NCBI RefSeq assembly: GCF_003918875.1
Contig: NW_025767301.1
Coordinates: 1,054,001-1,118,000 of the forward strand
Source: Haliotis rubra
Taxonomy: Eukaryota
Direction of reading: 5' to 3'
DNA length: 64,000 nucleotides
Part shown: positions 7,001-13,000 of the stretch, piece after piece
How positions within the stretch are numbered: position 1 is the stretch's first letter
Layout of the letters: every line of letters begins with the position of its first letter
The notes under the pieces: generated by a model
What the model was told of the DNA's origin: nothing
Databases searched by the model: none
What the model saw: only the letters and a program-made list of their open reading frames with translations
Program-made: the position numbers and the translations under genes

Positions 7001-10000
7001 TTTAAAACTACAAATTACTGTCACCTTTAGGGTAACCTTATTGATAACATATACCGACTGAGCACCTGTGCCTGAATCTTGTTTCTATGCCAGCACTTGA
7101 ATGCAGGATTCTGCCATCAATGTCAGTGCACACCTACCTGTGGATTGTCCTTGGCCAGGGTGTGGATTTTGGTCCACGCCTCTTCTCTTTGTTTGTTTTT
7201 CTCTTTTCCCTGAAAGAATCACCGATACTTAGCAAAGTGTTGCCTGTATATTTTCCTTATTCCTGGTAGGTGAATTTATTACTACAAAATGATGCAGTGA
7301 GAGAGTGTAACTTTGTTTTGCCAGTAGTCATTCCAGCGACATCATGTAAACCAAACCAGTGGTTGAAAGGATGAGCATCGGCTTATGCGGCAGGAATAAT
7401 ACTTGAGTGAGTGAGCGAGTTTTGGTTTTACGCCGCTTTTAGCTATATTCCAGCAATATCACGGCAGGGGACACCAGAAATGGGCTTCACACATTGTACC
7501 CATGAGGGGAATTGAACCCGGGTCTTCGGCACGATGAGCGAACGCTTAAACCACTAGGCTACACCACCGCCCGAATAATACTTGAAATATGAATACCTTT
7601 TGCTTCTTCTCAGAGGAAGAGTACGCCTACCAATTATTCTGCAAGTCTCAGAAAGTCTTTTACATTAAAATCTGAGAAGGGGAACCTACTCTGTCTGAGA
7701 GACATCACTGTTGATGGATGCAAATTGCAGTGCCAGTTTAAGTTGTTGTTTATTTGGCTCTCTCACCAACCATATAACTTTTCAACTGAATCAGTTTTTC
7801 AATCTTGCAGCCATACCATGATGAAACGTTAGAAATGTAATGACAAAACTGAGAATGTATTTCACCTATACACCGCCACAATCAAAGTGAGGTTAGTTGT
7901 AAAGCTAAACATGGTATTCAAGATGTGGTTGGGTGGTTGGTTGGTTGGTTAGTTGGTTTGTTGTTAAACGCCTCACTCAGCAAAATTCCAGGTATATGCC
8001 AATGGTCTATATAATCAAGTCTGGACCAGACAATCCAGTGATCAACAGCATGAGCATCGATCTACGTAACTGAGATACGATTACATGTGTCAACCAAGTC
8101 AGTGAGCCAGACTACCCGATCCTGTTAGTTGACAAGCATGGGTTGCTGAAGACCAATTCTAACCCGGATCTTCAGAGTTATTCAAGATGTGAACGTGCAT
8201 GCACATGTGTGTGACTGCCAGTAACAATAAATTCCATATTGATGCTGAAAGCTATGAAAATACAAGCACCCACTTCTGTCTCTCTGCCTTGTATTGCTGA
8301 GTGCAGTCATCAAACAGTTTCTGGTTCATCTCCATGAAGAGCTTCAGAGCATTGTAGATCAACCCGTGTATTGTCCTGCAACCAACCATGCCTCAATTAC
8401 AACCCAGCATAAACCATGTTTCTTTGACAAAACAGCTCAAATATTCAATAATAAAAACACGATTGCGAATGATTTAATAACGTAACACTAGCATTTAACA
8501 ATCTGCTGATTTGAAACAAAGACATACTTTACGACCAAAAATTGACTATAGTCTTACATTAAGTCAAGTGTGCAAGACATGGTTTTGACAACATTCAGTA
8601 CATATATATCCCTACACAGCTGTTGATGTGAGAATCTACATGCGCAGCACTCACACACAAAAACATCAGCTGCAATATCATGCCATCAAAATAAAGATGA
8701 TTACTGTAGAACCACCTTCATGCTAACCAAAGTGGTAGTAGAGCAACCAAAGTAAAGGTATCAAATCTTGTCAGTGAATCAAAACATCAACTGATTGAAG
8801 GTATTACATGAATGGCAATGTTACGCATGGAAGTTTTGATTCCAGGTTTTTCTTATGACTTTTGTGATAACAGCTGGCTAAAGAATGAACATTAGCTTCC
8901 ATAATCAATCTGCTAAATCAGCTTTATATATCCAGCTTTTGGTGGTAAGATGAAGCTTGCATGAATATTAATGCGCATCTGTACCCTCCCTACCTATGCA
9001 ACTTGAGTTAGTGAGTGGAAATGGTTTTACACCGCTTAAGCAATATTACAGCAATATCGCGGATGGGGAAACCAGATATGGGTTTACATTATACCCATGT
9101 GGGGAATGAACCCTGGCCCTCAGCGTGATGAGCAAATGCTATGACCACTCGGCCACCCCACTGACCCCAAAAGCAAAGTGATTAAATTAGCATATTCAGC
9201 GTCAACTAACGCGCATAATGTTAGCAGCTTACTTGTTCCAATGCTCCTTGCTCTTGTAAAGAGCGGGGAACATGATTGGCAAAACGGCAGAGGCATTGTC
9301 ACTGATCAAACTCAAGATGTACTCGTTATTCCAAAAATACAGTGCTCGCTTCGGCAACCTGGACGATGAAACAAAAATAGCAAAAGAACTGATGACAAGC
9401 ATGACAATGGATCCAATACAGAGGTATGTATGACAGATATGTATATATGTACGAGGTAGAATCACTCATGCAATGCAGAGCATAGAGACACATGGGGAAC
9501 TGAAAGAAAGAAGTCCAAACTCAAATCATGTGAAAAATGTATGGCTTATCTGGCACCTTTACATAATGGGGCTCCATGTATTAGGATGGAAGGACTTCAG
9601 GCAGTCCTTGATATACTTGTGCAAATTTTATACAAATGAATCAAATCTGTCACTAACAATAGGAATAGAAGACAGCAGTCTGTTTCATCGCAAACACTGA
9701 ACACTGGACCAATAAATGTTCTTCAAATTTTTGAATTTAGAACACATTTGGCAAATTATAATCTTAAAAGATGCACAAATGTTTATGCCCTTTTTCCATG
9801 CTGTATTAATCTGCATATTAGAAGAGAGATTTCTAATTCAAGGTAACTGGTAGGCGAAACCAGTTAGAGTTGTTTTCAATAAAATAATTGATTCCTGTCA
9901 TTAGGGAAAGTAACAGAAATAACGAGGCCATTTTGTGCCCCTTGACGGACTTCCCCCTGAGGTAAAGGCATCAGATGTGGCCTGGGGAGCCTGAGGCAGC

Positions 10001-13000
10001 GCTCTTTCAGGCAAGGCAGGAGGGGAGCGGTCACCATGGAAACGAGGCATTGTGCACAGACAACCAGGTTCAGATATGAAATGGCTGCAGCTTACCTGAA
10101 ACTCCAAAATGACAATTCCTCCAATGAGGAATTTTTAATAATTGATGTCATTTCAACTGAATTTCCATCGCATTTAGATTCCAAAGGTTTGCATATTCAT
10201 AGATTGACTGCAATGATAAATGATTTGAATTTTTTAAAAGATTTTTGTTCATGGTTAGAATGCTATTTCAAGAGTGAAGAATAAGAAAAAAAATATGGAA
10301 CTTGTTAAAGAATTTTCAAACTTCTGGTTGCAAGAATACTGCAGGCAAACCATCTCCAACCGAAAGTTGGCATGCACGCATGTAGGGATGGCTGGACGGA
10401 CGGATGGACATAAGTACGAAAGTAGGGTTAGGAAGTGACCAATCTTACTTGTTCCAATGTTGTTTGGTCTTATAGAGAGCTGGGAACATTACAGGGAGGA
10501 TGGTACTAACATTGTCGCTGATTAGACTAAGGATGTACTCATTATTCCAGTAGTACAGAGCCCGCTCTGCAACCTGCAAATACAGATAGCTTCTCTTGTT
10601 TAGTCCATAGTACATAGGACACACACAGGGCCTCAACTACACACACTGGGTAATGGGCTACATAAACACTCCTCTCAGCCTCCTTGAGGAATGGTGACCG
10701 CGGGCTGCAATAGGATAACAACATCAGGAATGGCCACAAGACAATCCATGGAATGTTCTTTTTGGAATGTTTGGAAACATGCATTAACTATGTCAACAAT
10801 TTATTGCAGAGTTTTCCTAGTGACTTGTACGATAACATTTGATAATAATGTTTATATTACATTTACTGCAGTTTTTGATTATTGTATGGTCTATTGTGAA
10901 CTGCCTGCTATGATGCTGCTATGAAGATGAGGGCACAAATACCTGGAAGTGTGGACTTGAGACACATTTGGCCAGTTGTTTGAAGAGAGGACCCATCACC
11001 TTGGTGAACTCGGCTGGTTCTATCACATCAAGGATCTCCTCGAGCTCATTCAGAAACATCACCTACAACAATCCCACCAGAACTGTACCATGGGCCATGT
11101 TGAATCTCTGTCATTAATTACACAGTTCCCAATACCTAAACTTGCTTAATGTATAACTACTTTCCTTAATAGCAAAAAGATGTTTCACGTCAATGTTCGT
11201 TAAATATTTCCCATTGTTCTGTACTGAGTAAAACAGTTATGACACCTACCTCTTTTGGACTGTGCACTTTGGGCCAGAATTTCAACAGCCCCATGATAAC
11301 CTAGAAACAAAATATTCTGAAGAATATGGTCCCGTCTCTATGCAGGTAACATTTTCATTTCATTGAAATGATCACAGTTTGGCTTCTATACAGAAAAACA
11401 TTTCAGACCGTGTCCTTTGTAAAGCCATGAAACCTAGCCAAGTTGTGCTAGGACACAGGAATAGCTGAGGTGAGCTCATAGTAGCAGTATAAAGAGTTAC
11501 CATGCAACGGTTTAACTTGGATTCTCTCTTCTAACACAGTACACTGACTAATAGTCAAACAATCTTTGTAGTGGGTGAGTTGCTTTTAGCAATATTCCAG
11601 CAATAACATGGTGAGGGATAACAAAAATGGGAACTGAACCCAGGCTTTTTTGTGTGACAAGCTGGCACTTAAACCAATAGGCTAGGCTAGGATTTCTATA
11701 CATACTGTTGTAATGGTTATCGTTAATCCATAGTAAATATTGAGTTGTGTCAAAGTGCAATGATTTGTGGAAAGATGCCCTTGAGATTGGACTCCAAACT
11801 GATGTCCAGAGTACTCAGCAATGCTTTAGAGCCTGACAGTATGCTTAATCGCTTTAAAAGCCAGGTAAGAGAGCTCTACTTCCTGAGGTGTAATGGACCC
11901 GTTGTGTAATGTCTTAGAAGTAGCTGATGTACAGATCTGTAGTCACAAAAACTGCCCATTCAGGATTTATTGAGCCACCCATTGTAGATCAATTACTGCT
12001 GTTCCAACTCTAACAAAAGGCTTCACATCTTGCATTAAAGGTGAGACCCTAGTCAGGTGAGGTGAAACTAGGTTCAACGTGGCATTATTGTACTTGCATA
12101 TGCCTTGTTTGTGTAGCTGCTTGTAGTACTGCAGATGTATGGCAGTTTTATAGAGCTAGCCTACGGTACCACAATTAACAAGTACATACTGACGCCCTAC
12201 CAACCCCTGCCAGTTTCGATGTCCTCTCATTCTGCCTACAGCTAAAAACAACACAAGTCATGGTCTGTTGGTCACAACTGTGTAGGCAGAATGAGAAAGC
12301 GATAGATAATACTTGACCCTACCTCCCCACAAGAAAAAATGGAAGAGCTTGATTTTTTTGTGTCTTGTTTTTTTGTGTGTGTCTTTGGTTTTTTGTTTGA
12401 GTTATTTTGATAAGCGGACTGCTTGATTCTTCGTTGTTATATGGACATTCTTATGTTTTTGTTACTTACTGTTTTCTTATTAAATACACAATGCCATTTT
12501 AGAAAGTGGTCAAATGTAACATATTGTTACGGTTAATACTTTGCCGTGACAAAAGCGTGTAAAAGTCCCCTTTGAACCAGCAAAATAGAACACAGACAAG
12601 CACCAGAGAGGGTAACTAGTTCAATCAACTAACTGCTTTTGTTATGATGTGGCCAGGGGTGGAACCACCCAGCTTCTGCTCCCTTGACAGATGCTCTCTA
12701 TAAATAGCCAACAGAGGCAGTCAGTGGCACCCACACCAATGTCATGTCATGGAAACACTGTGATGCACAAGGCATTGTTTCTCCATAAAAGTGAGTTTAG
12801 TTTTACACCACACTCAGCAATATTCCACCTATATGGCAGGGGTCTGTAAATAATCGAGTCTGGACCAGACAATCCAGTGATCAACAGCATGAGCATCGAT
12901 CGGCGCAACTGGGATACAATCACATGTGTCAACCAAGCCAACGAGCCTGACCACCCGATCCCGTTAGTCACCTCTTAAGACAAGCATGGGTTACTGAAGA

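Follow-up and report, generated by a model that had tools for sequence, protein, structure and literature searches.

A tandem pair of ancient, probably mutually exclusive exons in a gamma/delta-type B56 gene of abalone

Tandem-duplicated mutually exclusive exons have been the subject of surveys that include their frame incompatibility and nonsense-mediated decay (PMC5740500, PMC9741552, and PMC9013439), and in the two-exon cluster formed by exons 7a and 7b of human ATE1 the choice is controlled by competing long-range intronic RNA helices (PMC7797038). A precedent of another kind is offered by the B56 regulatory subunits of protein phosphatase 2A (PP2A): Vallardi et al. placed the region that steers human B56 to the centromere (Sgo2) or the kinetochore (LxxIxE) at residues 405-425, with the loop beside the catalytic subunit, and a four-residue exchange between EPVA (alpha/epsilon) and TKHG (gamma) relocalizes B56-alpha (PMC6398977). 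We report here on a 64,000-nucleotide (nt) stretch of Haliotis rubra, called the window below, the minus strand of which carries a B56 gene with two versions of its exon 12, 12A and 12B. The explanation that best accounts for our data, to which we assign a probability of about 0.85, is that these exons are a genuine, ancient, tandem-duplicated, mutually exclusive pair in the single gamma/delta-type B56 gene of abalone.

The abalone pair resembles the general class in that the exons are adjacent and homologous, agree in length and phase, have a length that is not a multiple of three, and would be represented once per productive mRNA; the pair is likewise of ancient origin, with strong purifying selection acting on each copy. 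It differs in its host gene, B56/PPP2R5, which features in no paper that we found, and in being restricted to spiralians (molluscs and annelid-like genomes). With ATE1 it shares a two-exon cluster and conserved intronic elements, among them candidate helices that would either exclude one exon in a loop or have an arm in common for which they compete. With the human B56 system it shares a location, because exon 12 ends inside the loop and its position 38 aligns with E405 of alpha and the T of gamma, but the abalone swap alters only the first of the four residues, and the vertebrate difference lies between paralogous genes, not splice forms. B56 subunits decide the substrates of PP2A, and how closely related B56 isoforms gain different partners is an open question; depth of conservation and position in a known specificity loop are what make the pair chiefly of interest. 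Our literature searches for mutually exclusive exons in B56, PPP2R5, or widerborst returned no description. An earlier reading of the same stretch (the original prediction) had stated that it knew of none, which agrees with our literature searches, but the pair is already represented in RefSeq isoform sets, where models of Haliotis cracherodii and other molluscs differ by the swap of this one exon. The parts of the gene on which the argument depends are as follows.

868-46861, minus strand: B56 gene (PP2A regulatory subunit B', gamma/delta type by similarity), about 16 coding exons, located by matching RefSeq isoforms P0393 and P0297 to the window with tblastn
10943-11062, minus strand: constitutive exon 11, ending ...SSPHFQ in phase 0; an RNA contig of depth 69 ends at the 3' end of the exon
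10449-10573, minus strand: exon 12A, 125 nt, class A (Y8, T36, Q38); peptide identical at 42/42 residues to the exon of H. cracherodii isoforms P0387 and P0393
9233-9358, minus strand: exon 12B, truly 125 nt, class B (F8, S36, E38); the dominant RNA contigs of runs X19 and X20 join it to exon 13
8275-8375, minus strand: constitutive exon 13, the first base of which completes the codon split by exon 12; contained in RNA contig pieces 8273-8374
7138-7209, minus strand: constitutive exon 14, which lacks one base in the window; the contig of DNA run X1 inserts a C behind 7202

Among solved structures, the spliced ortholog P0393 was most similar to human B56-delta (8u1x_B; E = 3.8e-276), followed by gamma (E = 1e-257), with delta and gamma both ranking above alpha and epsilon, and the B56 family domain PF01603 was present in all relatives retrieved; by full-length similarity, the gene is of the gamma/delta type, closest to delta and gamma. 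Two exon copies had been predicted at 10573-10449 and 9358-9233 of the minus strand, and both are there, with the phases and splice sites claimed for them. Exon 12A measures 125 nt and 12B measures 126 nt as assembled (125 nt once corrected); both have phases 0/2, and each copy has a cag/G acceptor and an AA/gtaag donor, in the window and in the genomes of H. cracherodii (L007, GCA_022045235.1), H. rufescens (L008, GCA_023055435.1), and H. asinina (L009, GCA_037392515.2), the species assignments of which follow published sources (PMC9709981, PMC9709998, and PMC11393055). When 12B is read without one base at 9350, the peptides differ at 7/42 residues (Y/F, V/A, T/A, I/V, V/I, T/S, and Q/E), and 15 further codons differ synonymously, including a serine AGT/TCT switch, so that a recount returned the figures of 7 and about 15 given in the original prediction. 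At the nucleotide level, 31/125 positions differ (75% nucleotide and 83% residue identity); the changed fraction is 0.81 at synonymous sites, which are saturated, and 0.11 at nonsynonymous sites (Fisher P = 5e-11), a pattern far beyond chance. Together with the orthology of each exon class across species described below, these fractions bear out the proposal of an old duplication with purifying selection acting on both copies. As homologous neighbors of equal length and phases, each with its own splice sites, the two exons have the structure by which tandem-duplicated mutually exclusive exons are defined.

As assembled, 12B contains a surplus base, one of the two T residues at 9350-9351, and runs into a stop after 10 codons, as would be expected were 12B a decaying pseudo-exon with a real frameshift, the inclusion of which gives a truncated or degraded product. 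The reads that bear on this point come from DNA run X1 and three abalone RNA runs; X19 and X20, which carry the labels of different organisms, contain spliced contigs and are evidently RNA. In X1, a 3.4-kilobase contig over 8153-11400 showed no mismatch to the window and a single gap, namely, the omission of one base at 9350 at full depth, and the same run adds a C behind 7202 at full depth, which repairs exon 14. The base at 9350 was also omitted by low-depth contigs of the three RNA-type runs, and the extra base at 9351 is not found in 12B of H. cracherodii, H. rufescens, or H. asinina. Because neither anomaly is seen in the X1 contig and the three other Haliotis genomes, the surplus base of 12B and the missing base of exon 14 are errors of the assembly consensus. 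The original prediction had suspected as much of the extra base, for which it had proposed a short-read check at 9345-9358, and had noted a 1-nt indel in the constitutive exon at 7138-7209, which is real in the window sequence and reflects the C missing behind 7202. An alternative acceptor 9 nt inside 12B (gaag/CGA), which would restore the frame of the exon as assembled, was considered and dropped, as the reads showed the extra base to be an assembly error. Single-base consensus errors in coding exons of this assembly matter for the calling of pseudogenes, and apparent frameshifts elsewhere in it deserve the same check.

Far from being the doubtful copy that the original prediction took it for, 12B dominates the RNA data. 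The dominant contig of each run (X19 record 10, depth 62; X20 record 16, depth 77) comprises the last-but-one coding exon, exon 14, exon 13, and 12B, with no mismatch in 12B. Both contigs end 12 nt past 9350, because exon 11 and the intron preceding 12B both end in TCCAG, so that the spliced and intron paths part at this point; the junction between exons 11 and 12B is inferred from contig ends and depth. The lack of the extra base in the reads and in the related genomes refutes the pseudo-exon explanation, as does the use of 12B by most annotated isoforms and by the dominant mRNA contigs; we attach practically no probability to this explanation. Exon junctions throughout were deduced from contig pieces, since an intronic high-copy repeat at 7421-8174 swamped the listing of joints. 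Very high-copy intronic repeats occupy 7421-7670, 7857-8230, and 8979-9165, where contig depths add up to as much as millions for X1 and to between tens of thousands and hundreds of thousands for the RNA runs, and many rearranged joints fall around 8011-8174.

Exclusivity can be accounted for by the reading frame. The combinations 11+12A+13 and 11+12B+13 keep the frame; inclusion of both copies leads to a stop 16 codons into 12B, and inclusion of neither leads to stops in exon 13. Only mRNAs with a single copy are productive, since the other two combinations run early into stop codons after the frameshift that had been foreseen from the exon length. Frame incompatibility followed by mRNA decay is thus the supported mechanism of exclusivity, although the decay step is inferred; nonsense-mediated decay would remove the wrong exon combinations. 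Steric hindrance was ruled out as the cause by the 1,085-nt intron between the copies. The proposal of a mutually exclusive pair is supported by this incompatibility, by the mRNA contigs containing 12B, and by RefSeq models with one exon each, but spliced RNA containing 12A was not seen in the three abalone RNA runs.

When cluster representatives were searched with the 12A peptide, many gene fragments were retrieved, which fell into two classes; full-length searches then yielded mollusc isoforms. Of 70 distinct 42-residue forms, 18 have the Y8/T36/Q38 signature of class A and 29 have the F8/S36/E38 signature of class B. In the eight species or genomes with both exons, the closest relative of all 16 exons was an exon of the same class in another species and not the partner in the same gene. 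Because each class is orthologous across species, the comparison points to one very old duplication; the pair has been kept since before the gastropod-bivalve split and probably since before the mollusc-annelid split. Independent recent duplications in each lineage, or gene conversion, would instead be suggested by mixed diagnostic residues, such as F-T-E in heterodont bivalves and Y-S-E in P0310. The saturation of synonymous sites between A and B, the nearness of every exon in the eight species pairs to its own class, and the common order of A then B in Haliotis, L002, and L006 tell against repeated duplication or conversion, which we judge very unlikely, and in favor of the single old event. 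Within Haliotis, constraint on the pair is conspicuous: 12A and 12B show one synonymous change each across the four genomes, compared with 8 and 7 changes in exons 11 and 13 (2/250 nt versus 15/221 nt; P = 0.0007), and the 12A peptide is identical in all four. Introns are 70% identical in the four-way alignment, and those of the window are 91% identical to those of H. asinina and 83% identical to those of the two Californian species. Both copies are therefore strongly constrained, even at silent sites. Constraint at silent sites is usual for regulated alternative exons.

The comparison with other mollusc and lophotrochozoan genomes that had been suggested for the two peptides has an affirmative outcome, with the A/B pair found in other gastropods, bivalves, and an annelid-like genome. 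In H. cracherodii, the RefSeq models XP_071079922.1 and XP_071079924.1 contain an exon identical to 12A at 42/42 residues, spliced between exons 11 and 13, and the sibling models XP_071079921.1 and XP_071079923.1 carry 12B; in the protein set, P0387 and P0393 have 12A and P0297 and P0391 have 12B. A and B isoforms also lie on a single contig in further RefSeq genes (P0307/P0315 versus P0304/P0306 and P0274 versus P0271-P0273). Nucella lapillus is represented by one model per class, and a Magallana isoform belongs to class A, with oyster models being mostly class B. The only model with both exons, from Tegillarca, is an evident read-through. Elsewhere among gastropods, and in bivalves and annelids, mRNA-length contigs and gene models likewise keep class A as an open, spliced exon. 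In genomic sequence, the order A then B, each exon with AG/GT sites, recurs in L002/L003 (A at 2257, B at 2837, and exon 13 at 3787) and L006 (A at 913 and B at 3130). Outside molluscs, a tandem pair was found only in L002 (GCA_013332715.1). Its B exon matches that of the annelid Ridgeia piscesae without a difference, and an annelid origin of L002 is our guess, its flanking exons being too conserved to tell. Annelid proteins have class A in Paralvinella and Dimorphilus and class B in Ridgeia, that is, the two classes in different species. A useful outgroup for dating is L001:1204-1420 (SRR22824305), which is possibly bryozoan by its SSQHFQ motif and contains exon 11, a single class A exon, a 70-nt intron, and exon 13. 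Because of this single A exon, and the A-like exons of flatworm and bryozoan proteins, class A looks ancestral and class B derived. The proteins P0323 of Lingula (a brachiopod) and P0350 of Owenia (a basal annelid) contain a 43-residue, vertebrate-like version of the exon (KNSKTHWNK) in place of a 42-residue A or B form.

With respect to the protein, exon 12 corresponds by alignment to residues 418-460 of human B56-delta and to B56-alpha from V367 through the second base of the P409 codon; the sequence of alpha there is ...YKISKEHWNPTIVAL, in which E405, P409, V412, and A413 are found. Within the C-terminal HEAT-like repeats, the exon would supply one helix pair and continue into the loop adjoining the catalytic subunit. 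Exon position 38, Q in 12A and E in 12B, aligns with E405 of B56-alpha, the first residue of the EPVA/TKHG loop, and both abalone isoforms have K, H, and G as the three remaining residues of this set. In 12B, the E lies within SKEHWN, the same six residues as in alpha and epsilon, and in 12A, the Q lies within TKQHWN; F8 is common to 12B and alpha, and a protein of the form YF...ISKEHWNQ had its best matches among solved structures in epsilon and alpha. The parallel drawn in the original prediction, with vertebrate gamma versus delta gene duplication, is not the better one, as 12B shares F8 and SKEHWN with alpha/epsilon and the Q/E difference falls at the loop that is EPVA in alpha/epsilon and TKHG in gamma. 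We hypothesize from these alignments that the switch tunes partner choice via this loop, in that the seven-residue swap, including Q to E at the E405 position, would give two isoforms that differ in partner preference. The acidic patch of B56, which aids the binding of basic motifs (E276, E310, D313, and E316 of gamma; PMC7108865), was rejected as an explanation of the Q/E switch, since it is situated upstream of exon 12. A more ambitious proposal is that one spiralian B56 gene alternates between alpha/epsilon-like (E, 12B) and gamma/delta-like (Q, 12A) loop states, equivalent to a division of labor between shugoshin-type and LxxIxE-type binding, set by competing intronic helices; we regard this as unlikely, but if it were true, one gene would achieve a division of labor that vertebrates give to separate paralogs. 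The exon pair is a natural experiment: the changes are limited to seven residues, which belong to a single helix pair and to the beginning of the loop, and comparison of the isoforms could show which residues matter.

The introns around both exons contain blocks that are better conserved than their surroundings and that may tune the choice between 12A and 12B, perhaps through long-range RNA helices. The blocks and the candidate helix arms are listed here.

10574-10791, minus strand: conserved intron block upstream of 12A, with 85-100% four-way identity (70% for introns overall) in the four-genome alignment
10319-10448, minus strand: conserved intron block downstream of 12A, from the Haliotis alignment
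9947-10105, minus strand: conserved block in the middle of the 12A-12B intron, with one arm of each candidate long-range helix, from the Haliotis alignment
9359-9596, minus strand: conserved intron block upstream of 12B, containing the arm 9572-9542, from the Haliotis alignment
8547-8857, minus strand: conserved block in the 12B-13 intron, from the Haliotis alignment
9952-9983, minus strand: 5' arm of a candidate intronic helix, predicted to pair with 9572-9542 (18 pairs, -30 to -32 kcal/mol in four species)
10660-10708, minus strand: 5' arm of a candidate interrupted helix that would loop out 12A, predicted by RNAalifold to pair with 10060-10018

The helix 9983-9952/9572-9542 is the outermost in the RNAalifold prediction and shows, among the four close Haliotis species on which covariation was judged, one double (compensatory) change from A-U to G-C in the rufescens/cracherodii lineage. 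The helix 10708-10660/10060-10018 includes an 11-base-pair perfect match and has one arm that is invariant in the four genomes; its changes are one-sided, with one broken pair and no compensatory changes. A plain inverted-repeat search found chance-level pairs only, RNAduplex on whole conserved blocks was uninformative, and Rfam gave no match in 8200-11100. We treat the predicted helices as leads only.

The two exons differ in how strongly they are presented to the splicing machinery and in their representation in RNA. The polypyrimidine tract, taken as the 22 nt before the acceptor, is 77% pyrimidine for 12B and 45% for 12A in all four Haliotis genomes. The strong tract and high RNA depth of 12B suggest that it is the default exon, and 12A would then be a weak, minor, regulated exon used in some tissue or stage. 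In the RNA runs, 12A was covered only by contigs of depth 3-9 that run on into introns and represent unspliced RNA or DNA, as in X20 record 19, a single unbroken contig that connects exon 11 with the following intron and 12A and reaches as far as 10286. The junction check proposed in the original prediction was thus borne out for 12B, joined to exon 13 at depths of 62 and 77, and not for 12A.

Several results weigh against mutually exclusive use of the pair as we have proposed it. The three abalone RNA runs, for which contig pieces were read in place of the repeat-swamped exon joints, showed neither an 11-12A nor a 12A-13 junction; the 12A isoforms of H. cracherodii are predicted (Gnomon) models, and no 12A isoform was found among the H. 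rufescens and H. asinina models examined. The functional interpretation depends on a single aligned position, one of four in human B56 at which the residues were tested only jointly. In contrast to the ATE1 helices, those of abalone are predictions with energies no better than shuffled controls (windowed duplex scan, best at the 5th percentile) and a single compensatory event in one helix. The absence of a spliced 12A contig, a 12A depth equal to that of the flanking introns, the weak polypyrimidine tract, and the stop that follows double inclusion would also fit an abalone 12A that is no longer a coding alternative, either an unused relic or a "poison" exon whose inclusion with 12B triggers decay and lowers B56 output. 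An exon of this kind is hard to reconcile, however, with a peptide that is identical in four Haliotis genomes and an exon whose 125 nt show a single synonymous change, compared with a 30% difference in introns; a poison exon has no need of a conserved protein sequence, class A is spliced as a coding exon in other gastropods, bivalves, and annelids, and RefSeq includes models with 12A alone. We consider a relic or poison exon decidedly improbable and retain a regulated, coding 12A within a mutually exclusive pair as the preferred interpretation.

Other features of the window lie apart from the exon pair. Runs of N (assembly gaps or masking) at 52324-52689, 54211-54450, and 59204-59333 fall outside the part of the gene studied here. 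The intron after the exon at 19892-19671 is filled by a tandem array (18035-19695) of about 25 copies of a 64- to 65-nt unit that are 79-92% alike. The B56 gene also has a four-residue insert, SLFS, at one exon junction at about 15455, and further alternative splicing involves a 45-residue cassette exon at 6093-5959, which is present in the 592-residue isoforms and not in the 543-residue one (P0297 versus P0277).

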